In this document: one piece after another, positions 8,595 to 64,000 of the stretch
How positions within the stretch are numbered: position 1 is the first letter of the stretch
Layout: each line of letters opens with the position of its first letter
Source of the DNA: Hydrolagus colliei
Taxonomy: Eukaryota
NCBI GenBank assembly: GCA_035084275.1
Contig: CM068769.1
Coordinates: forward strand, 248,001-312,000
Reading direction: 5' to 3'
Length of the DNA: 64,000 bases
The notes under the pieces: model-generated
The model's input: the letters and a program-made list of their open reading frames with translations, nothing else
Databases searched by the model: none
What the model was told of the DNA's origin: nothing
Position numbers and translations under genes: made by a program

Positions 8595-8944
8595 TGCCGT
8601 GTATTTGAAGCGCTTTGGGACGTTGATAAGTTGTGGAAAGCGCTATATCAAATGCAAGGATTATTATTATTATGTAACGGGCGCTGATGGTTTAGTTGGA
8701 GAATTTAGGCGAGGAAGCGGTAAGATAACGTGAGGAGAGCTGTACACTGAATGACATAGAGTGAGCAGGTCTCAGTTTTATCTACAAACCTTGTGTCACT
8801 GTCAATTTGTGTCATCTTCTTTGCTCACCCATCTCCCTACTCGATTTGGTTCTCTGCCATCACTGAAATGTCTTTGATCCACCGGGTGTCTGACACGCAG
8901 GAATATGGTTACTAGTCAGCCAGTGAGTACGAGAGGCTTTAGCT

Positions 8945-20472: not shown

Positions 20473-20538
<66 letters not shown>

Positions 20539-25254: not shown

Positions 25255-25927
25255 TGCCGTGTATATGTAAAGGGCGCTGATGGTTTAGTTGAAGAATTTA
25301 GGCCGGGAAGCGGTAAGATACCGTGAGGAGAGCTGAACACTAAATGACATAGAGGGAGCAGGCCTGAGGTTTATGCACAGACCTTGTGTCTCTATCACTG
25401 TGCGTCACCATCACTGCTCTGCCATCTCGCTCCTCCGTTGGCTCTGTTCCAACACTGACATGTCTTTGATCAACCGGGTGACTGACACACGCAGCGAGTG
25501 ACACCCATATCCCTATTTATGTTCGTTGACAGCACACGAACGAGTTCCACATGTGTGTATACCGCCTGTGGAGACCTGTAGCTTAACAGTGTCAGCACTC
25601 GGCCCACAATCGAGGGGTCAAGGATTGATTCCAGGCAGCTCGACATGTTGGATACGTTTCTTTCCTCCAAACCCCCGCCTTGGTTTACCGCTGACAGTGG
25701 TTCAACAACGTTTTCAGTAATGTAGCCCTTTTAATTTTCAACGTTATCTTATATCCCCACGCGACTACATACACACACAACACCAGCCCCCTCATTCCTC
25801 TCGCATTTTATGACGTAGCATTTCTTATATAACAAAACAACTAGCAAATAAAAACGAGAGGAATAACAATTAAAGATACAATTTGGAAATCTATAAAACG
25901 CTAAAGAGAGGTAAATAAATAAATGTT

Positions 25928-25960
25928 CCGCCACCTGCAACCTCTAGAAGTAGTATTCCA
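25928..25960 (-). promoter_or_regulatory. CTCF-like site
   Basis: TGGAATAC-11nt-GTTGCAGGTGGCGG. Confidence 0.4.
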
Positions 25961-26657
25961 ACCCCTGGGATATATGTACCCATGGTTGAGAACCGTCGAG
26001 CTAGCAGCAAGTAGGAATTGGGTTATTAGTCGATTAGTGGTTGCTTTCCAGTGGAAATACTCTGTTATTAAATAAGTAACTCAATTCACACCTATTTGAG
26101 TGTCACTGCTGCGTAGAATTTAAAGCGTATCTGAGCGCTCTTAGGCACCGTCCGGTGTGGAGCGCGCAATTGAATTAGAAGTTGTTTTTTTGGTGTTGTT
26201 ATCAAGTGACAATGCTTTTTCAATGGACTATCATCCTGGAAAAGGCGATATGCAAATCGACTATTTACTCGGTCCCTATTTACACATCGGGAATAATACT
26301 AAGAATCTATCCATTTGGTATAGCTACTTATCACGTACTCGAGACGTCCAAGTGCGCTTCCCTGTTGATACTGTGCGGTGAGTTTACTGTATGTATTATG
26401 GGATAAAGGCGGCAAATAACTTCACACAATCCACAAAAGGTTGTGGATTGAAGTGATCATTTTAATTAGGAAATATCACACGCTGAAAGACGATCCACCG
26501 TTAGATTAATAACTCGATTCCTACTCTCTCCTAAGTACGCAGAAGCATTTTGTGTTACAAAACAATGGCCGAGTTTCTGGCCTGCTGGGATGCGAACCAG
26601 CAGTCTTATCGTTTCTGAAGCGAGTGCTTTAGCCATTGAGCTACAGTAACTTCAGCA

Positions 26658-26984
26658 TGTTTTTGTACAGGCTCCTCTCCTCTGAGACACGCAGCACTGT
26701 GCTCTCTGCTGCACAGAAGTAAGTGGCGGTGTTTGTCATCCTCAGATCCCTGATTGTTAGTGTGCTGTTCTTCTCTTTTGTATCAGCCAAAGCACTTATC
26801 CTCTCCTCCACCTTGATCTCTCTGCTTCCCTTCAACAGCAAATCGATGGAGCCGTTTCCATACTGTTTGTACCATTGAAAGTAGTCTACGTTCAAAGCGG
26901 TGATGCAATCCATGGTTACATTTCCATTTTAATTCTCTTTAATTGATGGAGGTCTCTGTGACACTCCGCTTTCAGCGAAGACAC
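26658..26984 (-). pseudogene. TCR alpha-like V family 2b (segment H): V exon 26702-26984 with TAA at 26929-26931; RSS CACAGTG-28-ACAAAAACA; leader not identified
   Basis: GVFAESGVSQRPPSIKEN*NGNVTMDCITALNVDYFQWYKQYGNG...ATYFCAAE; spacer carries a GAGGA duplication. Confidence 0.88.
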
Positions 26985-28227
26985 CTGCGGCAATAGAAAT
27001 GAACATTCTTGGAAAGAATCTCGGAAAATATCTGCAACAACAAATCATAATTAGGTAATAAGTAAACAGGGATGTGTTTGTCCAAGCTCATACTCTACTT
27101 ACGGAAGAACAGAATCATTAAATTAAAAATGATATACAATGCGGTGAAACGAGGCTTCATTCTTAATAATCCACGTTGACTCGAGTGAAAATCTGTCTTT
27201 AAAATTAAACGGGAAGTCATGTAAAGGCTTATAAGCATTTATCAATGATTGTCGAATGTTTTTTTTAACTCTGCAGGATATGACTATATTCTGGGTAACG
27301 CCTTCACTGAAATATCACTTCCTGTATGTTGGGTTGTGCGGAATTCATTCGTTAATCGACTATCATCACGATTCTTATTTACTGCTGGTGAAACAGCGGC
27401 ATATTTGTGGATGAAGAAAACATACCCAATATTTTCCCCTGCTGGAGAGGTGACCTCCACAGCAACATCGAAATTACACGAAAATAGCGCCTTTGATATC
27501 GAAAGGACGTCCCAAGACGTTCAGCATCCTTGGTCGGGAACGGAGCAGGAGGGAAGGGTTGGGGTGAGAGCCGAGTAAAGGAGAGTAGAAGACGGGGAAG
27601 AGGTAGGAATGGGGGCAAAAGGCATGGTCGAAGTGGTAGCTCTTGAGAACGGCATTGAAGGGGGGAAATGAAGAAGCGAGGCGAAGGGAATGTGGGACTG
27701 AGTTCCAGAATGTGGCGGCAGAGAGGCTGAAACCCGGGTAACTGATGTTAGGGCGGTTCAGCGGGGACATAGAGCAGGCCAGAGCTCGCTGAACTGAGGT
27801 CACGTGCAGGCTGATAAACAGACGGCGGTTCAGAGATAGGCGGCGGGCAATGCCATGTGGGAGAAGAACACGAGCTGTCAAGACCACAGATCTTCTTAAG
27901 TGGCAAGCGCCTGAACCGATAAAGTACAGGATATCTCCTTCGTTGATTTCAAGTAAGCAGGGAAATAGATTGTAGATCCGACGGCCAACGGAATGCTGGC
28001 AGTAGAGGAATCGTGAAGGTCTCCCAGTTTTGTGCTGGTCTGCCCTTCAAACTCCTGCTGATGAGCCAGGTTGGGCTGCGTTCCATCAGCAGTGAGAACC
28101 CTAGACCTGGAAAGAATTATGTCAATGTGTTACCAAGCTACAGATCAGGTCTGGTCAGACATTCTGTTCTCCACTCAAGGAGGCAGGGGATTTACTTAGA
28201 ACACTGTGAGCAGTTACACGGCGCATC

Positions 28228-29711: not shown

Positions 29712-31384
29712 GACCATCGTGTCAATGCCTATCTGCCTGGATTTGGGAACCATTTAAATTGATAGACTAAGAATATCTAAACAAATCTCTGATGATTCTG
29801 TGCAATCCATCTCAATATGGGATTTTCCATCTATTAGAATGGAATGTGCTCTGTCTCTCGCTGGATCTATGCATCCTAACCATCCGATTACAGACGGTAT
29901 AAAATAAACTGACAAGACTTTGTGATGTTTAAATATGGATTACAAACATATAAATAAGCAAGTTTCTTTTGGGAGCACTGTCTCCCAAGGTTTCCCAGCG
30001 CTTCAACCTGGAATGCCCAAACTAAAATCACCCAACTTCGGGGTAGAAATCGCGGCTCTTTTCGGACTTATTTGGCAACAAAATCAGCGTTATGGAATTC
30101 TACAACAACGCAACAGACAATTACACCGGATACATTTGTTCGAATGCAGAGAGGTCAGGGCGAATCCTTGGGCAAGTTTCCTTGCTCGAAACGCATAATA
30201 ATAATCCGTCAAAGAAAAACCACAATTAAAAAAACGGTAATTTCAATCCACGACTGTTTGTGGGACACTGTTGAGCGCAATTGGCTGTCGCGATTCGCCC
30301 ACAGATTTATAGTCAATTCCCTTTACAGGATATTTTGTGACGCACTTGTAGGACGGTGATATGATGTGAAAAACGCTCTATTAACTGCATGAATTATTAT
30401 TATTAGTTAGATTTATTGTGCCTTTGTTGGTGCCGTGAAATATCAGCCAATTATCCCTCAAGATTTCATCAGGTTTCATCAGAATCCGCAAATGACCTGG
30501 TCAAGTAACAGATGTTTCCCTGTACTTTGGATTGTGGTGGTGGTGGAGGATGGGGGGCAGTGTCAATAATGTGTTGGGAGGGCTGTGTAATAGTTGATGC
30601 GCAAGGGAGTGGTATGAAGTGTGTGTACACGGAGGACGTTGTTCGCATTGTCCCTTTGACTCACACGTTCTCACTCCTTTTGCCATGCTGGTTTAGCCAC
30701 AATGGAAATCGCCAATGTTGGACCTTGATTGGAGTTCGTGAAACTTCCACAAAAAATGAACTGAGACAAGTTCCATGCAGCAAAATTTAATCAAAATAAT
30801 TGAACGCCCATACATAATATAGTACATCAAATCAGCGGAATGCTTACGTCAGGTTAGTAAAGTTTATGGCAATAGGTTTGAGCGTGTTAGTATAGTGGCT
30901 TTACAGCAGGAATCGATAGGGCACGGTTCCCATCAACCGATTGTGATTTAACAATACAGCCCAATATATCAACTGTTAACACAGCAACAACCGTGATGAA
31001 CACATTCTTAGTTCTGATCAATGCAATTCAGAGGCAAACGCATGTTCATTTATTCTGAACCCTTCTTCTAAAGTTATACCAACTAAACTGCAACAAACAT
31101 CATGTTAAATGTGGAATTCAGATTATTCGGAAAAAACTAACACGGATCATTCATGTGCAGACTCGGTTGTGATAAGCAACATTCGCCTTGTCAACAAAAC
31201 AATTTCTGAACAGGATTGTCATTCCAAAGGTCAGTTAACTAACATAAGCATTTCTGTCTGAGCGAACATTATATTTTAAGCGAGGGGTGTCGAATCTTTT
31301 GGCTGCTCCCAGTCCGTTTTCGTATTTGGGAAATGTCACATGAGCCAAAATCTTTGTGTTCCCCTTCCAGAAAAAAATAGTTAC

Positions 31385-31585
31385 ACAAAGGTGGTGGAGG
31401 CTGATTCGATAACAACTTTTAAAAGAGAATTAGATCTTTATTTAGGGAGAACAGGTCTATTAGGCTATGGGGAGCGGGCAGGGCAGTGGGATTGAATCGC
31501 TCTTTTCAAAGAGCCGGCACAGAGTAGATGGGCCGAATGGCCTCCTTTTGTGCCGTAAAATTCTATGAATCTATGAATCTATGAA
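31385..31585 (+). mobile_element. CR1 3' terminal fragment
   Basis: Matches 1500-1700, including the ATTCTATG-like tail. Confidence 0.85.
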
Positions 31586-32224
31586 ATCCTTTTCAGATTG
31601 AAAGGATTGCTTAAAATGCTCGTAACTACCTGCTGGGCAGCAAGGCTGGGAGTGGGAGCGCTATGGTGTGGGGTGGGGAGGGATTAAGATGACTGAAAGC
31701 GGATTGAAGCAGTTATACTTGATGAATGGTCATGGACATAAAACATTTGCGAATCAACGGCATTGCACATTTGTTGGTCAGGTCGGATGGGGGGATCGGG
31801 AGAAGAATAGAATGGATCGTGGCATATAACAAGAGTTTGGGTAGATCCAGGAGACCGGTCTGAACACCCAATCTATCTCAATTCTTCTCCATCATTCTGC
31901 GTCTCTCCTGCACGATATTAGTCAGAATCTCTCTCCCTCTTTCTCTCTCTTTCGCACATCCTGCACAGTCCCACTTTCTCATAGAGTGCCTTCAACTTTG
32001 TTATTTTTCTCTCACTCAATCTCTGTCTCTCGCACACAGTCTCTATCTCTCCGTTTCTCTTTCACCCTACCTCACTTAGTCTCAGTCATGCTCAGCTGAT
32101 CTTTGTCAGAGAAACAATTGATGGAATCTGCTAATTGTGGTCAGACTGAAGCTGGTATCTATGGCATGTGTCCATGGGAGTTAGAGAAAGTAGAATGAGC
32201 ACTTTGTGGCCAGTGGACTCACAG

Positions 32225-32329
32225 CTACACCCTGACTGCGGCGTACACTGTACCATCGTCAGGAGCGGTTTTGCGGCGATTGTCAATCCGGTTTCCTAAC
32301 GTCAGACTGGCGTAGTTGACATCAGAATC
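32225..32329 (-). CDS. Receptor gene 1, exon 10 (last): ITIM + ITSM
   Basis: Acceptor ttttcgcag|; DSDVNYASLTLGNRIDNRRKTAPDDGTVYAAVRV*; 105 nt, phase 0; conserved in the paralog. Confidence 0.88.
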   Translation of the reverse strand, partial: DSDVNYASLTLGNRIDNRRKTAPDDGTVYAAVRV

Positions 32330-33091
32330 CTGCGAAAAGGACGTCAGTCAACCCACTTGCTTAGGGTTTCAGTGGGAAAACCCAAAGCCCACCCTCACCC
32401 ATGTTGGGATGCCAAGCCATAGCACCTGTATATGTGTGAGCGATTTGTGCCTGTTTGTGTATATGGGCATTTGGGCTTGAACCTCCACCCTTTGAAATTC
32501 CATATCTCTGTCGCTTTGCCTTGCCTCCTACAAGTACATTATGAAGACCCATCTCTACGACCATTCCATCGTCCACCGTGTTACTATGAAGCGCTCTTAG
32601 ACGCCGTCCGACGTGGAGGGCGTTATATCAATCGAAGTTGTTGATACCCCTACTCTTCCTGCATTCTGGGTCTATACACCCAGTAAGTGTCACACACGTA
32701 CACACGCAGACATTTGAGGTCGTGCGAACTGCTGGCAGTGCCGTAAAGTGTTCAACAGATGCTGTTGGAACTTGAGAAACGAACGCAGCAGCCAAATTAT
32801 GCACAGCATCGTCACACAAACACATTCCGTCTCCCCCCAAAACTCTCTTCTGCCTGAGGCAATAGTGCTGCTGGCTGAGTTTGACTGAGCCGGGCTCTGA
32901 GCTGAGCTGTGCCAGCCTGATTGACACAAGGCACATGCTTGGCTCGCGCAAAATTTAATTGATGGTGACATAGGACGTGAATTCTGCTGAGCGAGGAGCC
33001 AACTGAGACTTACAGTAAGGCTGAGCTGAGCTGCATCTAAGCTCACACTGAGCCTGAACCAACGTAAAGCAATGATTCTGTCTCTACTCAC

Positions 33092-33132
33092 CACTGGAGG
33101 CACCAAGCTTGGAACGATTCTCACTGAAGCAT
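33092..33132 (-). CDS. Receptor gene 1, exon 9 (cytoplasmic)
   Basis: tttcag|AT GCT TCA GTG...CCA GTG|GTGAGT; 41 nt, phase 1 to 0; same length in the paralog. Confidence 0.85.
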
Positions 33133-33917
33133 CTGAAACAAAAACAAACAGTGTAGAGTACTAGCATATTACAGTTAAACTCAACGTTATTCAATATCAT
33201 TGTTAATCTTATAAGTAAGTACATTCTGTAATTAAAGACGAAAGTGACAATAATAATCATTTGACAAATAATAGTGTACTTGCAATTTTGGCACTGAATT
33301 TAACTGACTTGTCATTTTGTCGAGACATCCCAAAGAGTTTCATAAGGTACGCCGTTTAATGCAGTTATTGTTCGTATTGTGAGTGACTCATATCATATAG
33401 TTTGGGCACAACAGTGAGCCACAGAAAAGCAAGGTGAATGACATATTTTATTCATTTAGTGGACACCTATAAAAATTCTATTGCCTTTGTGAACAGTGAC
33501 TCCAGATGTCGAATGTGAAACTAAAGAGCCAGACGGGCACTCGCTTTCACATCTCATCTGAAGGGCAGAACACTTGAAGTGGGTGAAATTAATTCAGACG
33601 GTCAGACACACATTGAGACACATGGTCAGATACACAGTTAGACACATGGACAGACACACAATCAGACATGCAAACGGACAAACACACTTGTAGACACTCA
33701 CTCAAACACTCACACACATATACAAACGGATAGTCGCAGATCTTCAGCGAGTGGCAGCACCAGAGAAAGGTTAAGAGAACAATGGCCTCTAGCCAGACAG
33801 AAGATCATGAACAATCGATCGCGTTCTGTGGGATTAAGTTACATGGCTGACTACGCGCCTGTATGTGACCAGTTTTGTTTTCCCTCTGCGATCAAATCAA
33901 GGAAATCTCTCACTCAC

Positions 33918-33961
33918 ATGTGACGTTGCTGGATTCTGGGCCGCCTCTCTCAGGTAAATTC
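33918..33961 (-). CDS. Receptor gene 1, exon 8 (cytoplasmic)
   Basis: cccccag|G AAT TTA CCT...GTC ACA T|GTGAGT; 44 nt, phase 2 to 1; same length in the paralog. Confidence 0.85.
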
Positions 33962-35118
33962 CTGGGGGAAATAAGAACATAGAGTGATGAATTCACTGCT
34001 GCTGTAATAAACAGGACCACAGATCTGAGGCCTGGCCTTTTAATAGAGGTCACAAGCAACTATTTTGTCTAGTCTTGGGGAAATAACAGGGAAATCGTAA
34101 TCAGAGGATTGCTTTTGAAAGAGGAGAACAGGTACGAGGCAACGAATGGTAATAGCTGCTTTATCGCTGTATTTGTTGCTTTAGTTGGAAAATGGAAGAA
34201 GCATGGTGGTGTTCATTGCAAAATCTAATTTCACAACACAGCACTTACCTAACTTCGAGACAGTAAATAAAATATACGAGTTTCTGTTTTTCTGTGTGAT
34301 GGAGCCCGGTGACATGACGGTGTGTTTGCAGTTGGGTGGAGTGGTGAGGAGCTGATCTGTACACAGTGTTTACCTAGACTTGCATGACTTCACTTTTTGA
34401 TTATTTAAGGTGGGGATAGAGGGTAACATGATAACAGGGGTAGACAATTCTTGTCTTATAATGTGTTCCCCTAATTTGATAATTTGATCATTAAATTTGT
34501 GCGGGGTGGTGGGTGAAGTTGGGGACGGGGGTGGTAGAGAGGTTGCGGGGGTTTGCGGGGAGCTGTGTGGTAGGTCCAAGTCAGGTGTGTGCCTCGTGTG
34601 AAAACCCATTACGGTGGTGACATGCTCGAGTCACACGTGCTACAATTGGCAAATTCCTGCGTTTGTTATGATTATACAACAACAAATTAACAAATTACAC
34701 TTATAAAGGATACAGTATCTCTGCAACCCTATGCACCGTTAGAATAAGGCACGGTGTGAGAAGAGGCAGTGTGTATTTGCTCCCAATTGTGCATAGGCAT
34801 AACTGTTTCGGTCTCACCAGCCGAAACCTCACAGCTTTAAGGCAGAAACTATGTCTGGCAAGATTTATAGCGATTAAGAATTACGACAAGACCACCGTTG
34901 AGGGCTTTGTCTTGCAGAAATAACTGAACATCAGTGAAAGGAATCCAGTGTCTCCTTTGTCATCCCACTCTTGGTGAATAGTGACAGAGCGAAAACCAGC
35001 ACGATGAGGTGAGTTGTGCGACGTAAATGGGATAAGAGTTTCGAAGTACAGTGAAGGGGCGAGCAACAATATATGTAAGATGGATAGAGAGCAGAGTTTA
35101 GAGTAGAAGTATTCGTAC

Positions 35119-35146
35119 CTTTCTCCACTTGGACTGTTCTTTTTAG
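35119..35146 (-). CDS. Receptor gene 1, exon 7 (28-nt cytoplasmic micro-exon)
   Basis: CTGAC branch, ttcttgcag|CT AAA AAG AAC AGT CCA AGT GGA GAA AG|GTACG; phase 1 to 2 exactly bridges the TM exon and exon 8. Confidence 0.75.
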
Positions 35147-35713: not shown

Positions 35714-35812
35714 CTCTCCTATACAGACAGATGGCCAGGAAAATCACAGCGATCACTATCACAGTGACAATTCCAGCAGCAAGTCCTGAAATGCGTATAC
35801 CTATCCACTTTC
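35714..35812 (-). CDS. Receptor gene 1, exon 6 (transmembrane)
   Basis: Polypyrimidine...ctctctag|; GKWIGIRISGLAAGIVTVIVIAVIFLAICLYRR; G|GTAATT; 99 nt, phase 1-1. Confidence 0.9.
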
Positions 35813-36235: not shown

Positions 36236-36520
36236 CTGGTACAGTGATTCGCACTCGCTCGCTCTCTGGTGATGTGAATTCTCGTCCGCCTATGTTTGTT
36301 GTATATTGACACGAGTAATTTCCTATTTGGGTCGCCGATTGGTTGAATGTAGCCGTGTTGTTTTTCTCTGGAGCCAGCTGTGATGTGACAAACTCGCCGT
36401 CTCTGTATAAAGAGAAATTGCTGCCAGGATGATTCCCAGCACACGAGATCTCAGTGTGTTCTCCTCTCACTAGCACATGGGAATATGGCTTCAAAGAAAT
36501 GTTTGGCTTCGGAAGTGGAT
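36236..36520 (-). CDS. Receptor gene 1, exon 5 (Ig domain 2, C2-like, LRC/FcR type)
   Basis: DPLPKPNISLKPYSHVLVRGEHTEISCAGNHPGSNFSLYRDGEF...GNYSCQYTT...SPESERVRITVP; 285 nt, phase 1-1. Confidence 0.92.
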
Positions 36521-38163: not shown

Positions 38164-38448
38164 CCAGCAGGGAGACTTCCACTCGCTTGCTCTCTGGTGA
38201 TGCGTGGTCTCGGCTCTCTACGTGTGTAGTATATTTACACCAGTAGCTCCCTGTACTGATCTCTGATGCGATGAACGTGGCCTTGGTTTCATTCTCTGGA
38301 GATGGCTGTGATGTAATAAATTGATCGTTTCTATAGAAAGAAAAATTGCTGCCAAGGTGATTCCCAGAACACGAGATCTCAGCTATTTCTCCCCGCACAA
38401 ACACCGGGAAATCCGGCTTCAGGTGTATAGTGGGTTTCTGCAGTGAAC
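38164..38448 (-). CDS. Receptor gene 1, exon 4 (Ig domain 1, C2-like, LRC/FcR type)
   Basis: GSLQKPTIHLKPDFPVFVRGEIAEISCSGNHLGSNFSFYRNDQF...GSYWCKYTT...SPESKRVEVSLL; 285 nt, phase 1-1. Confidence 0.92.
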
Positions 38449-39852: not shown

Positions 39853-40161
39853 CTGAGCAGATGACGGCGGCATCATTGTCGTGTGTTGCGGGATAGTGAC
39901 TCCAGGGATGTGAGGGACATTCCCTCAGAGTAGACTCATTGCCTCTGCACTGAACATCAAAAGTCACAATGGGAGCTATTGCTTTCCCAAAGTGAGCTCC
40001 TCCTGGTATTGACATTGCCTCTCCACAGCCCAGCTCCTTACACACCACTGCTACGTCCTTCATATCCCAGTCAGAGTCAAACACTCTCCCCCATATTCCA
40101 TCGTGGTAAACCTCCACTCTCCCAGCACACGTGATGCTTCCATTCGCCAGTCTCACTCTCC
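39853..40161 (-). CDS. Receptor gene 1, exon 3 (single-exon SRCR domain)
   Basis: GRVRLANGSITCAGRVEVYHDGIWGRVFDSDWDMKDVAVVCKELGCG...DVQCRGNESTLRECP...DAAVICS; 309 nt, phase 1-1, G|GTAAGT. Confidence 0.95.
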
Positions 40162-45008: not shown

Positions 45009-48000
45009 AGAGTATAAAAGGCAGAATGAGTATGAGAGAGAGAATGAGAGCATATTCTGCAGCTGGTGAAGGGAGTAGCTGGGAAAGCCGACAAGGAGAG
45101 AGTCGAGCCCAGATGTAATGAATGCATGGATTAGCGTTTCGGCAGTGTAGCTACGAGATTGTCTGGCAATGTTGCGCATGTGATGGATAAACATTCACTT
45201 CGCAGACTTGAGGAACAGGGATCGACCCCGCGGAGACTGAAACATTATGCAAATGTGGATGCGTCACCCAAATGGCCTTGCTTACTTGCTTACTTAATGA
45301 CAAATCGATCGCACTTGCTCGCCGATTTTACGACTGCATTCCAGTGGAAATTATTCCACCATAAATAAAATATTAGAACGACTGATTGGTCAGCGGATCG
45401 ACAAAAGTATGTGGAATATTATGATGCATAGTAGCTTTCCAGATTTGGGCCACATATATGCGATCAATCCGCTTGATAGTACATGCTGTGAAACACTTTG
45501 AGACGTCTGGAAGACGTGAAAACCGCAACATCAAATTCAATAATATTATTAGTATCACACAGTCAGTATATTGTATAGCGCATCATTCGAAATGTTTTTA
45601 GATGTCGCGAGTGTATCTTCCCAAACTACATAAACAGTCACTGTGTTTCTCCCACAAATGTGTAGTCAATTTTCCTACTTTCCTTCCCCCAACCACGACC
45701 CTCCCCTCCCTGCACTGTTCCCTACCTAATCCCCCTCCTTTCTCCCTCCTTTTCTTTTCCCTACCCCGACAACTCCCGCCCTTCTGTGGTCCCTATCTTA
45801 GGAATTTTTTTATTCTGTAAATGTTTTTGAGACGTCGATAAGACGTGCAAAGCGCAATATAAGTGAAAGGAATGTTATTATTTATTGTTATATCCGTGAA
45901 CCTAACATCTAACAACATCAATAAAATTACATTTGCAAAGCCACTTCGATGTCGAGAACACTCGGGCCCAAACACCTATGCTAACCTTTACACGAACCCT
46001 GATCATAAGCACACACGCCTTCCCCTCCCGCAGCTTCTGTTGGAAATTTTGAACGTAAAAATTAGAAAAACTGTGAGCAGCTTAAATTGTTAAAATAGGT
46101 GTGATAAAGAATCTGAGCTGTGATCTCTGTGGTTTCCCCGTAGGTAGATATACGTGCTTTTCACTCATCACATCAGATCAGCTAAGCACTCTTCACCAGA
46201 TTTTCAACAGAAAAGAAAACCTGCTACATTTATTCTTTCTGAAGTCTCTGTGTGCTTCTATTTTCACGTGAGGCTCTATCTCACGCTATCTTTCCATGTC
46301 TCTATCGCTCTCTCCCACTCACCATCTGACCCCATCTCTGTCTCCCTTTAGCTTGCTCTCCGTGGCGGACCATCTCTTTCTCTATCTCTGCCTCTACTTC
46401 TCTCTCGCTCTCTCGCTCGCCCCTCACACACTCCTTATCTTTCTGTATGCAGCGCCAACTGTATAGTTGTTCGAAAATTCATAAAATTTACATTTTATGT
46501 CAATATAGTTTACATTTCTGAATGATGTAAATCGAATCAGAAAAGGGCAGAATTAGAATTCATCATTCTGGTTGATGATGAGGCCAGCTCAACGCTGTGA
46601 TATTGTACATTGTAGCATTGCTGAAATAGTTGTATATTGATATAATTAAATTCAACAGTATGCTTCCACTTCTGAGCTACAATTTGCCGGCCTCTCCATT
46701 GCTTTTTGTGAAAAGAGTGAACGTTGATGCAGTGCCTGTCATGTGGAGAGGAAGTCTCAATGCAAATAATAGTCGAAGATGGGGAACAGAACGTAAGCAG
46801 ATGAGGATTAGGAGGAGGATTAGGCCATTCGGCCCCTCGAGCCTGCCACGCCAATCGACAAGATCATAGCTGAACTTCTTATCTAACTCCACCTACCCAC
46901 CTTATCCCAATATCCCTTTATCCACAAAAAGTCTATCAATCCCAGTGTTCAATATTTTCAAAGACTGAGCATCTACAGCCCTTTGGGTTAGACAATTCCA
47001 TAAATTCACTACGCTCAGTGCGAAAGGGCTGTACACTAATTTTAAGAATGTAAGCCCTGGTTATAGTTTCTCCAACCAGGGGAAAACGTCTCCAACTATC
47101 TAGTCTGTAGGGCGGACAAGCCACCTTTCAACTCGCGAGTTTAGCTGATAACGAATAGGAGATTACACAGTGAGTTGACAGTAGGTGCACATTAATTTAG
47201 TTAGTGTGAAATCTTATCATCAAATAATTTTCAGTAATTCAAGCAGTAATAATCCCTCTGCGACACGGTTTTCCCTGTATAAGTAACCAGTTTCCGATTG
47301 TGGTGTTTCTTCACAATCAGAACCAGATCTACCAGCGATTCGCAATGATGGCAGAAGCTCATCAGCTTAAATTGGTATTTTTGGGGTAGTCAGTGCATTT
47401 AAAATGCACTGATTGGAGACGCTTGTTTTGATCAATGAGGAGCAGGCCAGGCTGCCTTGTGATCTGTGCTCCATTTGTGGGACTGATTGTGTCTCCATAT
47501 AAGATGCAGCGATTTACAAGTTTCACAGGAAACCACCTACGCTGCTTTCATCCTAACAATAATATATTTGAAATATACACAATAATAAAAAATAAGAATT
47601 TAAACCATGAATTGTTGTGGGGGACGCTATTGTGCGCAATTAGCTGCCGCTTTTCACCCACATACACACAGTCAATTCACTTTACAGTGTCATCTGTGAA
47701 GCGCTTGGAGATATCGATAAGATGTGAAAATCGATATATCAAATGCAAGGTTCATTATTATTATCCAATCCCACCAGACCTCACAGATGTTGCCCATTGA
47801 ACCTGTCATGTTGGATGTATAAGTGACGGGAATGGAAGGTCACATTTAGAATTTTAATTAGAATATGTTTTCCAAACTAGTGAGGGTGGCTGGATGCAGG
47901 AATGGCTTCTATTCTGACTTCAGAATAAAAGATTGTGCCAACAATCAGAAATAACCTTCGTCATTCCCATCAAGGCTGTTTGTGGGGCGTTACTAGAACA

Positions 48001-49873: not shown

Positions 49874-50033
49874 NNNNNNNNNNNNNNNNNNNNNNNNNNN
49901 NNNNNNNNNNNNNNNNNNNNNNNNNNNNNNNNNNNNNNNNNNNNNNNNNNNNNNNNNNNNNNNNNNNNNNNNNNNNNNNNNNNNNNNNNNNNNNNNNNNN
50001 NNNNNNNNNNNNNNNNNNNNNNNNNNNNNNNNN
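49874..50033. other. Assembly gap (160 N)
   Basis: Run of N. Confidence 0.99.
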
Positions 50034-52789: not shown

Positions 52790-54235
52790 CCTCTAGTCCT
52801 CTGCACTCCATATCTCTCTGATCTCCTCGCCCATCACAACTGTAACTGCTTCTTGAACCCCTCCAATCAGGTTTCCGCCCTATCCACAGTACAGACACTG
52901 CCCTGGTCAAGGTCACAAATGACTTCCTAACCGCCTGTGACCAGGGCTCCCTCTGCCTCCTCGTCCTCCTTGACCTGTCTGCTGCGTTCGACACAGTGGA
53001 TCACACCATCCTCCTTCAACGCCTTTCCTCCTTCAACGCCTTTCCTCCCACCTCAACCTTCAAGGCACAGTCCTTGACTGGTTCCATTCTTATTTGACCC
53101 ATCGTTTACATTTTGTTTCTTCCAATGGCTTTTATTCAAACCCCCGCACAGTTTCCCACGGCGTCCCTCAGGGCTCTGTCCTCGGTCCCCTTCTTTTCAC
53201 CCTTTACACGCTCCCCCTGGGCGACGTCATCCGCAAACATGGGGTAAATTTCAACATGTATGCGGATGACACCCAGTTGTTCCTTTCTGCCTCATCCCTC
53301 AACCCCCAGACGATCGATGTTCTGACAGCATGTCTGTCCGACATCGAATCGTGGACGAGGGACAACTTTTTGCAATTGAACGTGAATAAGACCGAGGCCC
53401 TTCTGATTGGCTCAAGCCAGCGCCTCCGCACATCGGGCGCTGCCAGCCTCAACATCCAAGGCTGTACTCTACACCTCATAAAGCCAATCAGGAACCTCGG
53501 CATCATGTTCGATCAAAAACTTTCCTTCCTCCCCCGCATCCGCGCCTTGACCGGCACCGCCTATTTCCATCTGCGCAACATTGCCAGGCTCCGCAACTAT
53601 CTTACCCCCCGCCTTGCCGAAACACTCGTGCACGCGTACATCACCTCACGGCTGGATTACGGAAATTCTCTCCTAGTCGACCTCCCCAGTTCCACCATTC
53701 ATAGGCTGCAGGCCATCCAAAACTCTGCAGCCCGTGTACTATCCCGCACCCGCCTCCGTGACCACATAAACCCCACCCTCGCCCGTCTCCACTGGCTCCC
53801 CATCCTGCAGAGGATCGAATTTAAGATCCTCGTCCTCACCTACAAGGCCTTGCACGGCCTTGCCCCATCCTACCTCGCCGATCTACTCTCCCCCTATACG
53901 CAGTCCCGGACCATCCGTTCAACAGGACGTAGCCTCCTCCAACCCCCCCGCCCGAACCGCCACACCATCGGAGGCCGGGCCTTCAGTTTCGCCGCTCCCA
54001 CCTTATGGAATGCCATCCCTCAATCCCTCCGTTTCGCCTCTTCCCTTTCCTCTTTCAAGGCCGATTTGAAGACTTTCCTCTTCGATCGTGCCTTTTGTTC
54101 CACACCGAACTCTTTTACCTCCCCTTCGTGTTTCACCCCTTCCCAAACACTCCACTCCCAGTTCGGGTCACACGCCTCTTGTTTTGCGCCTTGGGACGTC
54201 CTCCCGACGTGAAAGGCGCTATATAAATGTAAATT
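52790..54235 (+). mobile_element. L2-clade LINE, RT region and 3' end
   Basis: ORF 53094-54212 ([21 protein letters not shown]); tail tgggacgtcctcccgacgtgaaaggcgctatataaat. Confidence 0.93.
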
Positions 54236-55156: not shown

Positions 55157-56170
55157 ATGGCGGTACGTGTCTATGTAGTGCCTCAAGGATCAGTCCTTGT
55201 GCCTCAACTATTTACCATCTACATCAACGATCTTGATAAAGACATCGAGCTTAATATATTTAAATTTGCTGATGATACGAAACTAGGAGGAAGCGTTAAT
55301 ACCAAGATTGACATTTTAAAAAATGCAGCGCGATACAGATAGGTTAAAGTGAGTGGGCATGTCGGTGGTCTTCGAAGTATAATATAGGAAAGTGCGAAGT
55401 CATCCACCAAAGTGGCAAGAACATCAGAGCAGGTTTTTTTTAGAGAGAGGGGAGAGATTGGAATTTATTAGCTTGCAGAGCGACTTGGGTGTGCTTGTAC
55501 ACCAAACACAGAGAGTTACTATTCAGGTGCAGCAGGCAACCAGGAACGCTAATGGTATGTTAGTTTTCATTCTGAAAGAGTTAGAGGATATGAGTAGTGA
55601 CGTCTTGCTGCAGCTTTGTAGGGCACTGGTGAGAACACAACTGGAATACTGTGTGCAGTGTTGGTTTCCTTATTCAAGAAATGATGTACTTGCCTTGAAG
55701 GGAGTACAGCGTAGGCTTGCTAGGTCGGTACTGGGAATGAGTTATGATGATAGGTTGTTTAATTTGTGCCTCTATTCTCTGGAATATCGAAGAATTATAG
55801 GGGATCTTATAGAAACATTTAACATTATTAAGGGGCATGACAAAGTAGATAGTGGGAGATAGTTTCCCTCGGTTGGTGAATCTAAAACCAGGAGTCACAG
55901 TGATTAAGTTAGGGGTCAGCCCTATCGCACTGAGTTGAGCAAAAACGACTTCACTCAGAGTGTGGTGGATGTACGGCATCCTTTACCTCGAAGGGCTGTA
56001 GATGATCAATCCTTGAATAAATTCAAGAATGTGTTAGATAGATTTCTAGTTTATAAATATATTACGGATATCGGGATAAGGCAGGCAGCTGGAGTTAGAG
56101 TTGAGTATCAGCCATGATTGAATGGCGGGACAGGCTCGATGGGCCAAATGGCCTTCTCCTTCTCCTACTA
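55157..56170 (+). mobile_element. Older, degenerate CR1 LINE fragment
   Basis: VPQGSVL...FADDTKLGG and LEYCVQCW motifs broken by frameshifts. Confidence 0.82.
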
Positions 56171-57229: not shown

Positions 57230-58925
57230 TACTGTCCAGCAAACTTTCACAGTGCTTCAATCTAACCCCATATCACCCTGGTGGTGACCAGCTCAGCAAT
57301 AACATTAGGGGGAGCTCCAACCTTTGGCCCCGCTCATTTCTGACACCAACAAACTTTCCCTCTCCTCAGGCACTGTCCCTACCTCCCTTAAAACAGCCAC
57401 CATCACCCCTATCCTGAAGAAACCCTCCATTGATGTGTCGCAACCATCAAGCTATCGACCCATCTCCAACCTCCCGTTTTTATCCAAGGTCCTTGACAGA
57501 GTGGTTGCCTCCCAGCTCCGCTCTTTCCTTTCATCTCACTCACTCGTTGAACACCCCCAATCAGTTTTCCTCCAAATTCACAGCACAGAAACTGCCCTGG
57601 TTTAGGTTACAAATGACATCCTAACCGCCTGTGACCAGGGCTCCCTCTGCCTCCTCGTCCTCCTTGAACTGTCTGCTGCGTTCGACACAGTCGATCACAC
57701 CATCCTCCTCCAACGTCTTTCCTCCCACCTCAACCTTCAAGGCACAGTCCTTGACTGGTTCCATTCCTACCTGTCCCACCGTTTACTCGTTGTTTCTTCC
57801 AACGGTTTTTCCTCAAACCCCGCACAGTTTCTCACGGCGTCCCTCAGAACTCTGTCCTCGGCCCCCTCCTTTGCACCCTTTACACGCTCCCTCTAGGCGA
57901 TGTCATCCGCAAACATGGGGTAAATTTCCACACGTATGGGGACGACACCCAGCTGTACCTTTCTGCCTCATCCCTCAACCCCCAGACCATCGATGTTCTG
58001 ACTGCATGTCTGTCCGACATTGAGTCCAGGATGAGCGACAACTTCCTCCAATTGAACGTGAGTAAGACCGAGGCCCTCCTGCTCGGCTCAAGCCAGCGCC
58101 TTCGCAGATCGGGTGCTGCCAGCCTCAACATCCAAGGCTGCACTCTGCAACTCACAAAGCCAATCAGGAACCTCGGCATCATGTTTGATCAAAAACTCTC
58201 CTTCCTCCCCCACATCTGTGCCTTGACCGGCACCGCTTATTTCCACCTGCGCAACATTGCCAGGCTCCGCAACTATCTTACACCCCGCGCTGCCGAAACA
58301 CTCGTGCACGCGTACATCACCTCAAGGCTGGACTACGAAAACTCTCTCCTCGTCGGCCTCCCCAGTTCCTCCATTCACAGGCTGCAGGTCATCCAAAACT
58401 CTGCAGCCCGTGTATTATCCCGCACCCGCCTCCGCGACCATATAAACCCCACCCTCGCCCGTCTCCACTGGCTCCGCATTCTCCAGAGGATCGAGTTCAA
58501 GATCCTTGTCCTCACCTTCAAGGCCTTACACGGCCTTGCCCCTCCCTACTTCACCAATTTACTTTCACCCTACAAGCCCACCCGGAACCTCTGTTCAACA
58601 GGACTTGGCCTGCTCCAAGCCCCCCGCCCGAACCTCCCCACCATTGGAGGCCGGGCATTCAGTTTCTCCGCTCCCACCCTATGGAATACCATCCCCCAAT
58701 CCCTCCGTCTCGTTTCTTCCCTTTCCTCTTTCAAGGACGATTTGAAGACTTTCCTCTTCGATCGAGCCTTTTGTTCCACCCCGAATTTTTCGACCTCCGC
58801 TTCGTGTCTCAGCCTTTCCCAAACACTCCCCTCCCATCTCGGATCACACGCCTCCTGTGCTGCGCCTTGGGACGTCCTCCCGAAGTGAAAGGCGCTCTAT
58901 AAGTGTAATTTGTTGTTGTTGTAGC
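57230..58925 (+). mobile_element. L2-clade LINE, RT region and 3' end
   Basis: ORFs 57324-57605 and 58031-58888; highly similar to 52790-54235. Confidence 0.93.
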
Positions 58926-59594
58926 TGTTGTGACTGCGTACAGTATAGATGTAGTGTGGAATTATATGTATTCTCTATTATCATTGTCCCTTTGTTTAGC
59001 ATCCGGATTGCATATCTATCTCACTACGTTGTAATTGTTAAAAGCTTTTGTCAGGCTGGATCAAGCTGAATCGTATCTACCAGTTTTAAGTTTTAATCTA
59101 ATTGGTTACCCTGCAGTGAATAATGAACTGACTCCAATTTCCTTTTATATAGCAAAATTTAATAACGTGTAAAAAAGAAGCTTTTACCTAATGAAGATTA
59201 TACATTTCATTGTATAAATGCATACGAAAGGTTAAAAAACGTCACTGCAAATGGTTTGCTTCAGCCGCGAGAGTGGCTTTGTTGTAGGAATCGATAGGGT
59301 ACAGTTCACATTAACTGATTCTGATTGAACAACACTATCACACCAATAACACACAGAGCTACCACTGTGAGTACAATCATCTTTCCGTTAAATGTAACTT
59401 TGCAACTCATGTGTTCGGTCATCTTCCCAGATCCTTGTATCGAAATGTATACCTAGACGTTTTGACCGCAAACGTACAATCAAATCACTTTACAGTATTA
59501 ACTTTAGAGCGATTTCAGGCTTCCACAAGATGTGCAAAGTGCTAAATCAAATCCAACGATTATTATTATTTTTTGCTGTTAACTGTGGCACACA

Positions 59595-60312
59595 GTTGAA
59601 GGTGGCAGGACAGGTAGACAAGGCTGTTAAGAGGGCATATGGAATACTAGGATTTATAAATAGGGGTATAGAACACAAAAGTCAGGAAGTGATGCCTAAC
59701 CTCTATAAAACTTTGGTGAGGCCTCAGCTGGCATACTGTTTTCAATTCTGTTCACCACACTACAGAAAGGATGTGAAGACATTGGAAAGGATACAAAGAA
59801 GATTTACGAGGATGGTGCTAGGAGTGAGGGACTTCAGCTATGAGGAGAGGCTAGATAGGCTAGGGTTATTCTCTCTGGAGCAGAGAAGATTGAGGGAAAA
59901 ACTAATAGGTTTATAAGATCATGAGGGGTTTCGACAGGGCAAATAGAGAAAAACTGTATCCACTCGAGGGCGAATCTGTGCCTCGTGGTCACAGATTTAA
60001 AATAGTTTCAAGGCGAAGTAGAGGGGAGCTGAGGATAAATTTTTTCACTCAGCGAGTTGTTCGAAGCTGGAATGCATTGACTGAAAAGTTGGTGGAAGCT
60101 GATTCGATAACAACTTTTAGAAGGGAATTAGATCTTTATTTAGGGAGAACAGGTCTATTAGGCTATGGGGAGAGGGCAGGGCAGTGGGACTGAATCGCTC
60201 TTTTCAAAGAGCCGGCACAGACTGGATTCATAGACTTGGTATGGTTTAGATTGGCCGAATGGCCTCCTTTTGTGCCGTAAAATTAGATGAATCTAAGAAT
60301 CTATGAATCTAA
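59595..60312 (+). mobile_element. CR1 LINE 3' fragment
   Basis: ORFs 59530-59916 and 59921-60193 match the CR1 at 847-1608, with one frameshift. Confidence 0.9.
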
Positions 60313-61180
60313 CTATCCAGTCACGTACAACATGCTTAAACATGCAATACGTTTCCAAAAAATTCATTGCTGTGCGGCCAAGAACACACCTGGTCAACAA
60401 AACATTTTCTCATCAACATTGTAATTTCAAATATCAGCTAAGCATCAGAAGCATTTCTAACTGAATCAACTGTGTTTTTTAGCAGGCGGTGTCCAATCCT
60501 TTGGCTGCTGCCGGTCGGATTACGTAATTGAGAATCATCACTTTAGCGAAAAGGTTTGTCTTCTCCTTCCAATAAGATAATAGTTGAACAGCGCCTTCAC
60601 GAAGGAAGGATGCCTAAAAATGCTCGACTACTGCCTATGCAGCACCTAAGATGGGGATGGGATTGGTGAGATGTGGGGGAGGGAGTTACAAATCTCATTG
60701 AAAGCGGAGTCAAGCAGTTATATCTCATGAATGGTCACCGACCTAAAACATTAACTCAATAGGAGAGGAGTCCTGTAGCTCAGTGGTTAAAGCACTCCCT
60801 TTACAAACGTGATTCATGTGATCGAATCCAAGAAGGCCTCAGCGACACACATGGCAAGTCTCCTTACTCCACAAGCCTAATAATATTAGCTCTATAACAC
60901 CCCCTCTGCTCATCCTTTCTCTCTCTCCCTCTCTGTCTAGCTCACTACTATTCCTGTCTCTCAGCTTCGGCGACAGTCAATCAATTTATCTCTCACTCAA
61001 CGTTTATCTCACTCATTCTCTCTTTCACAATCCGTCGCATACAGTCTGTATGATTCTAATTTGTTCTGTCACAGATGATTTGGGATGAAAGTTGAGGTCA
61101 GAGCGAAGCTGGCAATTACCAATGTGATGAAGTCAGAAAGAAAGATAAGCGAGAGCACCTCGTTGTCACCAGCCTCTGAG

Positions 61181-61285
61181 CTACACTCTGACCGTGGCGT
61201 AGACTATACCAGGGTCCACGTTGGTGTTTCGGGCATTCTCACTCCTGTTTCCTAACACCAGATTGGCGTAGGTGATATCAGCGTC
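61181..61285 (-). CDS. Receptor gene 2 (paralog), last exon: two ITIMs
   Basis: tgtttgcag|DADITYANLVLGNRSENARNTNVDPGIVYATVRV*; 105 nt. Confidence 0.87.
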   Translation of the reverse strand, partial: DADITYANLVLGNRSENARNTNVDPGIVYATVRV

Positions 61286-62078
61286 CTGCAAACAGTTTAA
61301 CAATTATCACACCTGCCGACGGACAGTGGGAACCCCCCACCACTTACACCCTTCCAGCACCCCACCCCCACCAATGGGAGGCTCCAAACCATAGCTCATG
61401 TGTGTGTTTTTGTGTGTGTGTTTGTTTGAGTGAGTATATCTCTCATTCGTTCCTTCACTCATTGAGTCTCCCAGTGTTTGTGTGTGCGCGCGTTCGGCTT
61501 GTAACATCGAACATTTGGATCCCCATTCTCCAGTCCCCGTTTGGTTGCTCGCTTATCTGCGACTCTCAAGTACGTGTTCAAGACATTACTCTTCTTCGAC
61601 CAACTTCCTGCCCGTAATCTATCTGCCTTCTGTATCCCCAAACCACAGCACAGGTCTAAATCAATGACTGACTAGCGTTTTGGGATGTACATACATAGAT
61701 GCAAACATTTACAGACAGACACAAAGAAACACACGTGAACACAAAGGCATACACATATACACACATACACACATACACAGACATGTATGTACATATAAAC
61801 ACAAGTACACAGCGCTAAACACACCATACGTACTAACAGCTACACACACAGAGACAAAGTGGTGACTAACGCTGTGCGGAGTCAGTCTGACAAATACCTG
61901 GACTGGGTTTTATTCAAGCTTACAGAGGCTCGACTGACACAGAAACGGATCTGGGCTAAGCCTGGCTGACATAGGACGTGAGCTATACTGACAAGGCCTG
62001 AGCTGGACTGAACCAGGCTAAAACAATGTTTTAGCCTGACCTGAACCAGGCTAAAACAATGATCCTGACACCGCTCAC

Positions 62079-62119
62079 CTCTGGAGTCTCTGATCGTGGA
62101 GCTCGTCTCACTGTAGCAT
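62079..62119 (-). CDS. Receptor gene 2, penultimate exon
   Basis: tttcag|AT GCT ACA GTG AGA CGA...CCA GAG|GTGAGC; 41 nt. Confidence 0.83.
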
Positions 62120-62852
62120 CTGAAACAAACACAAAGGTGAATTAACATCAGCAATGTTTCAGTAAAATTCTCCGGTATTCATCAATAATATTATGATATC
62201 AATACATACAACTTAGTATTATTGAAGAAAATAACAAGAATAATTATGAGACAAAGAGTGGTAGAATATTAATTCTTGTATTTAGAATAAATCCTGAACA
62301 TGTCGACAAACGATCCCAATGTGCTTCAGAATAGACGCGGTACAGTGGAGAGACTGTGTACCCTCCCTATGGAAATGGCGCTCCAGAAAGATTTTGTTGA
62401 TTCCATTGTTGCTACGTTTTATAAGAGTGGACCATAAACATCCATTTTGCGCACACTGGTGTCCCATAGACACATAGTTAGACCACGTACAGACACACAG
62501 GCAGACACAAATACACACCCACAGCTAGACAAAGGGAGACGGTGAATGAGACAGAAAGAGATAGAAAAATAGTATAAGTAATCATCCTTGAATTTGATGT
62601 AGCACTTTCCATATATTCTAGAATTGTCAAAGAGCTTGACAGAATATACTGTAAATTTTGTGGGGGACACGCGGCACCCAAATGCGCACAACAGTGTACC
62701 TCAAAAAGTCGTAGATTGAAATGAACTCGCAGTTGGAGGAGTTTGATGAGCAAGCGATGGATGTGTGTGGTGCTCAGTCATATTGCTGAATAGGTCTGTC
62801 TGTGACTGGCTCCTTTCATTCTAGGTTCAAACCCAGGAAACCTCTCACTCAC

Positions 62853-62896
62853 ATGTAAAGTCGCTGGCTTGTGCGCCGCCTCCCTCAGGTATGTTC
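62853..62896 (-). CDS. Receptor gene 2, cytoplasmic exon; upstream exons presumably lie beyond the window
   Basis: ctttttcag|G AAC ATA CCT GAG GGA GGC...TTT ACA T|GTGAGT; 44 nt. Confidence 0.83.
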
Positions 62897-64000
62897 CTGA
62901 AAAAGAAATCAGAGAGGAAAGAGGAATAAATTCACTGCTGTTTTATTCAAGAGGAAAACAGAGCTCAGATCTGCGCTTGTTTCAGCGCCAACAAAAAATA
63001 TTGCCTGTCAACTGTGGAATAATGGACCTGACAGGATTGTGGCTAAATAAGCAGCAAGGACATGAGGGGCTGAATGATCTGTGCATTATAATATTGCGTG
63101 CAGTTATGGTCTCCATTTGAAGAAAGGATATCCTCGCCTTTGTGCCTGGGGGGGGGGAGGGGGGTGCAGAACGTAGATTCACTAGGTTGCTACCTGGGAA
63201 AAGGGGAGGAGCTATGAGGATAGGTTGAGCAATCTAGGCCTATATTTTGAAGAATATAGAACCATCAGAGGTGATCCTATAATAACCTATGAGATTACTA
63301 AGGGGCACGGCAGAATGGATAGTGGGAGACCTAGTTGCAGAAAGTATAACCAGTGGACATAATATTGCAATTATTGGTCCATTCTCACTGAGATACGGAA
63401 AAGCTTCTTCACTCAGATGGCCGTGAATTTATGGAATTCTCTAAACTCAAAAGGCTGAAGATGTTCAATCCATGAAAATATTGAAGACTGAAATTGATAC
63501 ATTTCTTTTGGATCAAGTGAGTAAGGGATATGTGAAGGTGGATTTCGATTAGAAGATCAGTTATGACCTTATTTAATGGCGAGGCAAACTCGAGGAGCCG
63601 AATGGCCTACACCTGCTCATAATCCGTATATTCCTAAATTATTGTGCGTTCAAATCACTCCGAATTCACTTTGCCATTTTCAGTTTCAATTATTTTTGTT
63701 CTGGGACGGACAGTTATCTGACTTGTGCGAATCCATCTTACTGATTATGAATTCTAGTCACTATTCCTGCTGGTGGCAATTCCTGTGTTAGTAGTGTAAA
63801 TCCAATATCTCTGCCAACCTGACTGTAGTGAGGATTAAGCAAGAATAACTGAAAAGTTACGTTGACAGATCGCCTTTCGCGTGGGAAAGACGTCTCAAAG
63901 CGCCGAACAATCAAGTCGGGACCAGAGCGGGGGGGGGGGGGGGGGGGGGGGGGGGGAGGGGGGGGGGGAGGGGGGGGGGGTGTTAAGAAGGTGGGATGTT

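Follow-up and report, generated by a model that had tools for sequence, protein, structure and literature searches.

Three small exons upstream of an SRCR and Ig-like receptor gene in Hydrolagus colliei as the probable 3′ end of a diverged inhibitory-type paralog

A 64,000-nucleotide stretch of the Hydrolagus colliei genome (GenBank assembly GCA_035084275.1, contig CM068769.1, positions 248,001 to 312,000 of the forward strand; hereafter the window, whose own coordinates are used throughout) contains one complete gene and the 3′ end of another on the same strand. The complete gene (gene 1) joins an SRCR domain and two immunoglobulin (Ig)-like domains to a transmembrane (TM) segment and a tyrosine-bearing cytoplasmic tail, and the second (gene 2) is represented by three small tail exons between 61181 and 62896. 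The question that this locus raises is whether these exons terminate a working receptor gene or are the remains of one. We consider, with a probability of about 0.6, that they form the 3′ end of a working inhibitory paralog in a family of receptors combining SRCR domains with Ig domains of the Fc receptor (FcR)/leukocyte receptor complex (LRC) type.

The three exons of gene 2 lie on the minus strand, each behind a good polypyrimidine-AG acceptor. Exon A (62853..62896; 44 nt, phase 2 entry) ends in a GTGAGT donor (tttctttttcag/GAAC...ACAT/gtgagtga) and codes for (R)NIPEGGGAQASDFT and the first base of a tyrosine codon. Exon B (62079..62119; 41 nt), which is likewise bounded by an AG acceptor and has a GTGAGC donor (tgtttgtttcag/ATGC...AGAG/gtgagcgg), finishes the motif FTYATV and codes for (Y)ATVRRAPRSETPE. 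The terminal coding exon C (61181..61285; 105 nt including the TAG stop codon at 61183-61181) is preceded by aactgtttgcag and codes for DADITYANLVLGNRSENARNTNVDPGIVYATVRV, in which two motifs of the immunoreceptor tyrosine-based inhibitory motif (ITIM) consensus are spaced 23 residues apart. The joint translation, NIPEGGGAQASDFTYATVRRAPRSETPEDADITYANLVLGNRSENARNTNVDPGIVYATVRV followed by the stop, would provide the distal 62 residues of an inhibitory-type cytoplasmic tail with three YAxV/L motifs, in order FTYATV, ITYANL and IVYATV, the last two of which conform to the ITIM consensus (I/V/L/S)xYxx(I/V/L).

Gene 1, also on the minus strand, can be read whole from its SRCR exon through the stop and serves as the comparator. 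Its ectodomain consists of one SRCR exon (39853..40161; 309 nt, phase 1-1; Pfam SRCR, E=4e-28) and two Ig-like exons (38164..38448 and 36236..36520; each 285 nt, phase 1-1), which match Ig_2 and Ig_C19orf38 in Pfam and, among PDB structures, are closest to FCRL5 (E=3e-16), LILRB2 and LILRB1 (1e-10 to 4e-9), PIR-B, OSCAR and KIR3DL1. An uncharged TM segment (exon 35714..35812) is followed by a 28-nt cytoplasmic mini-exon with AG/GT borders (35119..35146; AKKNSPSGER), which was omitted from the earlier list of exons and is required to join the TM exon to exon A in frame; it resembles GKQKSSSGER of Callorhinchus milii. Tail exons A (33918..33961; 44 nt), B (33092..33132; 41 nt) and C (32225..32329; 105 nt) give NLPERGGPESSNVTYASVRIVPSLVPPVDSDVNYASLTLGNRIDNRRKTAPDDGTVYAAVRV and a stop, again 62 residues, with the motifs VTYASV, VNYASL and TVYAAV, which are by the usual definitions two ITIMs and an immunoreceptor tyrosine-based switch motif (ITSM). 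No leader exon of gene 1 or of gene 2 was found in the window by tblastn with C. milii leaders, a signal-peptide scan or a fuzzy search for a 36-nt second leader exon like VIFLERKTVESA, the last giving no match at up to six substitutions, with 40162-61180 as the interval of interest. A match to 'ERKSVET' at 51863 was rejected as a leader, not being an exon. The assembly has runs of N at 4296-4430 (135 bases) and 49874-50033 (160 bases), the latter between the gene 2 3′ end and the gene 1 SRCR exon, where the leader exons of gene 1 are expected.

The tail exons of the two genes have identical lengths and phases, and in both the first tyrosine codon is split T/AT between exons A and B. The preliminary description of this locus had reported these three minus-strand exons as well as the retention of all three tyrosine motifs; its coordinates are exact, the exons have AG/GT borders, and the translation of both tails gives the motifs as it listed them. 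The two tails share 34 of 63 aligned positions (stop counted) and 142 of 190 nucleotides without any insertion or deletion (indel). In tblastn searches of the window, exon C of gene 1 finds exon C of gene 2 (E=3e-10) and exon A finds exon A (50% amino acid identity), the three exons being colinear. The gene 2 tail stands in tandem, in the same orientation, 21 kb upstream of the gene 1 SRCR exon, and tblastn of the 64-kb window returned no additional tail, Ig, SRCR or NxxR-TM exons. The possibility that the gene 2 exons are alternative 3′ exons of gene 1 was rejected because they are located upstream of its first visible exon on the same strand.

The similarity extends into non-coding DNA. Flanking homology, placed earlier near 59.1-63.1 kb and 30.8-34.1 kb, was recovered as colinear blastn patches of 41-227 nt (70-83% identity) between 30894-34029 and 59272-62968, patchy yet real; the most distal of them, at 59272..59335 (minus strand), matches 30894-30957 with 81% identity over 64 nt. 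DNA lying 430-790 nt 3′ of the gene 2 stop (60389..60752, minus strand) is homologous to 31186-31747 in blastn patches of 72-74%, and a MAFFT alignment of 31150-31760 with 60380-60770 gives 72% identity, with an insertion of approximately 200 nt in the gene 1 copy only; this DNA is probably the 3′ untranslated region or the flank of the duplicated unit. A patch that is out of order (31387-31585 vs 60085-60307) is a dispersed repeat with other copies at 1500-1697, at 23313-23511 and elsewhere. The introns are mostly unalignable, with global alignments of about 52% identity and 10-16 gap openings each, whereas the exons of the same copies align at 71-80% with no gaps. The pattern is that of a true segmental duplication with later independent repeat insertions, and the origin of gene 2 would be best explained if a unit also containing gene 1 was duplicated in tandem long ago.

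Relatives of these genes are numerous in C. milii, and its protein models (P numbers) and loci (L numbers) place the H. colliei tails in a family. The best protein matches to gene 1 all come from this species (49-61% identity), where dozens of models contain SRCR and Ig domains and bear automatic names such as 'uncharacterized protein LOC103172721', 'alpha-1B-glycoprotein-like', 'immunoglobulin superfamily member 1-like', 'DMBT1-like' and 'OSCAR'. Several full-length models end in similar tails (e.g., ...NVTYATVRKVPRSVPPMNADIIYANLMLGNRIENGRENGENDGPIYATVRV), and the tail consensus that the C. milii family has in common with the window is N.P.GG...VTYATVR..PRS..DADI.YANL.LGNR.EN...GPVYATVRV. The gene 2 tail is 56-60% identical to those of P0003, P0005, P0023 and P0028, and in P0003, P0005 and P0023 such tails are joined to SRCR+Ig ectodomains and uncharged TM segments. 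Cytoplasmic exons of 28, 44, 41 and 105 nt recur in the C. milii loci, with SRCR and Ig exon types that are alike; tail exon lengths match in L002 and L003, L002 having an exon C of 105 nt and L003 a 28-nt exon. Gene 2 shows the 44/41/105-nt pattern of the family, and no 28-nt exon belonging to it was found in the window. In direct searches with gene 2 itself, exon C (34 amino acids), which is too short a query, had no matches among 1.84 billion representatives, and of the 98 word-sharing candidates for a chimeric query evaluated on the gene 2 tail only, none scored.

The C. milii genes are clustered: two family genes are adjacent on MU249866.1, and one 60-kb stretch (L004) contains at least two units. 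Together with the same-strand gene 2 tail, these dozens of clustered relatives support the earlier proposal of a diverged tandem paralog in a clustered multigene family. A highly conserved second signal-peptide exon of 36 nt (phase 1-1) is present in five C. milii family units (L001 21583-21618; L002 9379-9414; L003 3452-3487; L004 7651-7686 and 41679-41714). The genes of the LRC have a second signal-peptide exon of 36 bp. Other C. milii members combine a TM segment of NxxR type with a short tail in the same exon (P0027, NVAR; P0041, NVGR; L004 58389-58535, NLAR). Further members with NxxR or NxxH TM segments, the latter being NIVH and NVLH, include L001 36951-37097, P0037 and P0008. The preliminary description had anticipated activating partners with a charged TM segment; NxxR members do occur in the C. 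milii clusters, none is found in this window, and such partners for the window genes are plausible. One model, P0022, annotated as 'E3 ubiquitin-protein ligase TRIM17-like', has an SRCR domain and two family-type Ig domains joined to PRY/SPRY (B30.2) in a butyrophilin-like arrangement, which may be either a real fusion or an annotation artefact. Some C. milii members carry stop codons or are decayed (the SRCR exon in L002; an Ig exon and the tail in L003), and pseudogenes are thus common in the SRCR+Ig family.

This last point bears on the chief alternative to a functional paralog, namely that the three exons are an orphan 3′ fragment or belong to a recently inactivated pseudogene and are no longer expressed in a receptor, either because only the last exons and the downstream flank were duplicated or because the upstream part was later destroyed. 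We regard this as unlikely, although it has to be weighed seriously. Apart from the stop-bearing and decayed members at the C. milii loci, a number of observations weigh against gene 2 being functional. The pairwise ratio of nonsynonymous to synonymous substitution rates (dN/dS) between the two tails is 0.87 by the Nei-Gojobori method (NG86) and 1.05 by maximum likelihood (bootstrap median 0.90, interval 0.46-1.92), and the differences are spread evenly over the first, second and third codon positions (20, 14 and 14). Exon identity (142/190, 74.7%) does not significantly exceed the 277/403 (68.7%) of non-coding DNA in the same blastn patches (p=0.15) and is about that of the downstream non-coding patch (72%). 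At the ITIM positions defined a priori (-2, 0 and +3), 6 of 9 residues are identical, which is not significant (p=0.31). The first motif, FTYATV, is a non-canonical ITIM with Phe at -2, where every relative aligned has Val and gene 2 alone has Phe. The 1 kb past the gene 2 stop has no canonical poly(A) signal, the first AATAAA being 1041 nt 3′ of the stop. Finally, neither tblastn nor a scan for AG-N(22-34)-GT revealed a gene 2 mini-exon, TM, Ig or SRCR exon in 62897-64000, the final 1.1 kb; clear homology with gene 1 ceases at 62968, 72 nt upstream of exon A, and the presumed intron 5′ of this exon is occupied by a dispersed repeat (63183..63625) that matches 55712-56167, 46805-47009 and C. 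milii loci. Overall, the gene 2 tail has evolved almost neutrally. The preliminary description had proposed purifying selection on the signalling motifs and had taken a dN/dS near 1 as evidence against its own reading, and a value near 1 is what the comparison gives.

The introns are mostly unalignable across the unit, so that a loss of homology upstream of exon A is expected even if the whole gene was copied, and weak colinear similarity returns beyond the repeat: 63711..63820 (minus strand) matches 34582-34730, within the intron between the mini-exon and exon A of gene 1. This match is weak (64% over 99 nt, E=0.002, by lenient blastn in a small search space) and suggests that the duplication reaches at least 0.8 kb upstream of exon A. 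The mini-exon of gene 1 lies 1.16 kb upstream of its exon A; with this match and the repeat insertion in gene 2, the corresponding mini-exon is expected at about 64.2 kb, past position 64000, and its absence from the window is therefore uninformative. The sole mini-exon candidate in 62897-64000 is poor in K, R and S, lies within a repeat and is not credible. Near the end of the window, long poly-C tracts occur on the minus strand at 63940-63990 and 63150-63165; these likely break short-read assemblies and help to make the region upstream of gene 2 hard to follow.

The integrity of the tail also speaks against an orphan fragment or a pseudogene. In a neutral simulation, the probability that the frame stayed open and that five splice dinucleotides and the stop survived was 0.107 when half of the divergence was placed on gene 2 and 0.009 when all of it was; when the three tyrosines and the three V/L/I residues at +3, all of which gene 2 keeps, were added, these values fell to 0.028 and 0.0004. 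The exons, unlike the introns, have accumulated no indels. The YAxV/L cores (Y, +1 and +3, a set defined post hoc) are identical in 9 of 9 positions, compared with 24 of 53 elsewhere (Fisher p=0.0019), and Y and +3 alone are identical in 6 of 6 compared with 27 of 56 (p=0.018). Three full-length C. milii inhibitory tails (P0003, P0005 and P0023) all agree at 32 positions, of which gene 2 keeps 28, more than the evidently complete gene 1 (20 of 32), which places much of the amino acid divergence on the gene 1 side. The synonymous divergence (dS) between the genes, 0.39, is near the values obtained with a C. milii tail (0.42-0.49), which dates the duplication far back and implies that the tail has been preserved over a long period. 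The decayed tail of C. milii P0046 (L003 12063-15674) provides a negative control for the appearance of lost constraint: its 28-, 44- and 41-nt exons are intact, but 18 nt are missing from exon C, and neither the second nor the third tyrosine survives, the motifs now reading ITDAKG and PVNSTL.

Integrity, motif cores, family consensus and age argue that the gene 2 tail has been maintained despite a dN/dS of approximately 1. Purifying selection on the motifs, as first proposed, is thus not borne out by a ratio of about 0.9 for the tail as a whole, but finds support in the intact frame and splice sites, in the cores and in the family consensus. The tail would be a disordered linker carrying short linear motifs, with nearly neutral drift in the linkers and conservation of the motif cores, exon lengths and splice sites; free linkers, fixed short motifs and a fixed exon geometry are the expectation for a disordered signalling tail. 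For a tail made of such motifs, loss of function does not follow from a pairwise dN/dS near 1 alone.

A second alternative accepts a functional tail and differs in what precedes it, proposing an ectodomain unlike that of gene 1 (Ig-only, with several SRCR domains or with many Ig domains). Among C. milii relatives whose tails and TM segments are nearly identical, ectodomains do vary widely, from two SRCR and four Ig domains in P0003, two and two in P0005 and one and one in P0023 to six Ig domains without SRCR in P0001 and one SRCR with seven Ig domains in a unit of L004. As a separate account we consider it improbable, and since it is compatible with a functional inhibitory paralog it is a refinement more than a rival. 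A chance open reading frame or repeat-derived similarity, for which only the abundance of dispersed repeats in the region could be adduced, is effectively refuted by the colinear exons of identical lengths and phases, the exon C match, the colinear flanks and the absence of any other match to the gene 2 exons in the window.

If gene 2 is, as we infer, a complete and expressed inhibitory paralog, its tail would be expected to recruit phosphatases. Upon ligand engagement, Src-family kinases would phosphorylate the tail tyrosines, and SHP-1 or SHP-2 could then dock on the paired phospho-ITIMs through their tandem SH2 domains, SHIP being a further possibility. By analogy with LILRB, KIR-L, PIR-B, FCRL and the Xenopus XFL TM2 receptors, such docking would dampen activation driven by immunoreceptor tyrosine-based activation motifs. 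The ITIMs of LILRB1 and KIR read VTYAEV, VTYAQL and IVYTEL. The terminal motif, described earlier as an ITSM in gene 1 and an ITIM in gene 2, is correctly so assigned by motif definition, and its -2 position is variable across the family, being Pro in four C. milii tails, Ser in another, Thr in gene 1 and Ile in gene 2. It is speculation that this change from ITSM to ITIM switches the adaptor or phosphatase used.

Beyond C. milii, the closest parallels among known receptor systems are found in amphibians and mammals. Xenopus XFL is a large clustered family of FcR-like genes (Guselnikov et al., 2008; PMC2413239), of which the inhibitory class has an uncharged TM segment and one to three YxxL/I/V motifs in small cytoplasmic exons apart from the TM exon, and activating members pair an NxxR TM segment with a short tail encoded by one exon (PMC2413239). 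The chimaera family likewise has both designs. It differs in that many of its members are headed by SRCR domains, whereas XFL ectodomains are Ig-only, and in that some XFL genes follow a 30/21-bp signal-peptide exon rule, whereas in the C. milii family the second leader exon measures 36 nt; FcR/FCRL genes have a second signal-peptide exon of 21 bp (PMC2413239). The NxxR TM segment marks activating LRC and Xenopus FcR-like receptors coupled to FcR-gamma (PMC6557307, PMC2413239), a hallmark recorded back to amphibians and birds (PMC6557307).

The preliminary description had likened the family to LILR, KIR or WC1. The resemblance to LILRB and KIR-L holds, as it does for PIR-B, FCRL1-6 and Xenopus XFL: these are tandem multigene families with NxxR activating partners (PMC6557307) and multiple V/IxYAxV/L tail motifs. 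The similarity to LILR, KIR and FCRL is distant and without orthology, those receptors have no SRCR domain, and gene 2 is comparable by its tail alone. The likeness to WC1 does not hold. Among group B SRCR receptors, WC1.1-like, SCART1-like and CD163/M130-like proteins match at 45-58% in the SRCR exon only and share the SRCR domain type and the multigene organisation, but WC1 and SCART have unrelated tails and ectodomains built of SRCR repeats alone, whereas gene 1 has one SRCR and two Ig domains; the visible part of gene 2 has no resemblance to WC1/SCART. A group B SRCR domain and FcR-like Ig domains occur together in FCRLS, the sole described SRCR-Ig chimera that was found (PMC7940838). However, FCRLS is a single soluble mammalian protein without a TM segment or tail and with a C-terminal SRCR domain, and it is thought to derive from a mammalian FCRL-CD5L recombination (PMC7940838), whereas gene 1 has its SRCR domain at the N-terminus, is membrane-bound and bears ITIMs.

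The genes adjoin a region of a different kind. From 1 to 27400, the minus strand carries eight or more V-type Ig exons, of two types by sequence, ending in YYCA, YFCA or YLCA (e.g., 8067-7705, 5186-4815, 3117-2713, 10158-9958, 19719-19288, 23177-22881, 26928-26644 and 329-3), at least two of which are followed by a recombination signal of heptamer, 23-nt spacer and nonamer (22847-22809, 4881-4843). Their best matches are unnamed C. milii 'Ig-like domain' proteins (59-68% identity). With no D, J or C exons interspersed, this run of V exons is suggestive of a translocon-type T-cell-receptor (TCR) V cluster adjoining the SRCR+Ig genes, and this adjacency to apparently rearranging V segments hints at a link with an antigen-receptor locus. 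In a PDB search with one V segment, most matches were multi-domain antibody constructs, and TCR and Ig could not be told apart. The V region is itself a diverged segmental duplication (4812-10169 vs 19351-27018, offset by approximately 15-17 kb), with patches at 6868-8221 vs 22003-23313 (81%), 8219-8607 vs 24874-25267 (90%), 9349-10169 vs 26205-27018 (78%) and 4812-5572 vs 19351-20095 (74%).

Against C. milii, identity reaches at most 61% for gene 1 and 68% for the V segments, and the repeats that the window has in common with that genome peak at 70-80%, without the 90-96% class found within each genome. The repeats of the window include long interspersed nuclear element (LINE) fragments with open reverse-transcriptase frames at 23406-24353 (minus strand, 316 codons) and 802-1605 (plus strand, 268 codons); this pair, inverted and 96% identical (820-1697 vs 24191-23314), is younger than any other repeat pair of the window. 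LINE fragments also occur at 52974-54209 and 57755-58885 (88% identical to each other), 55383-55859 and 59398-59913. A G+C-rich minisatellite at 15977-16684, with about 27 copies of a 20-22 nt unit (CACACAGTCACTGCCCCGCC), accounts for a strong dip in GC skew at 16-18 kb.

Tandemly duplicated ITIM-bearing receptors of the Ig superfamily are already well known, and a second ITIM-type tail alone is what is expected in fast-evolving immune receptor clusters; an SRCR-headed family in cartilaginous fish is less ordinary. No published account of the chimaera SRCR+Ig family was found in freely searchable full text, the subscription literature being outside this search. It is conceivable, though we put it somewhat short of an even chance, that genes 1 and 2 belong to an undescribed chondrichthyan branch of the FcR/LRC paired-receptor superfamily, which may be characterised by SRCR-headed ectodomains, three-YAxV/L tails in 28/44/41/105-nt exons, NxxR partners and a 36-nt second leader exon. 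A survey in 2014 reported no FcRL or C2-type LRC homologs in sharks, elephant shark included (PMC4016189). If the features listed are homologous to those of tetrapod LRC/FCRL genes, the chondrichthyan family would contradict that statement, and the ITIM and NxxR cassettes would date to the jawed-vertebrate ancestor. The value of gene 2 is that it makes the SRCR+Ig receptor a member of a duplicating family and not a one-off chimera, with a three-tyrosine tail design conserved over at least two chimaera genomes, and this family bears on the timing of the origin of paired Ig-like receptors with inhibitory and activating members.

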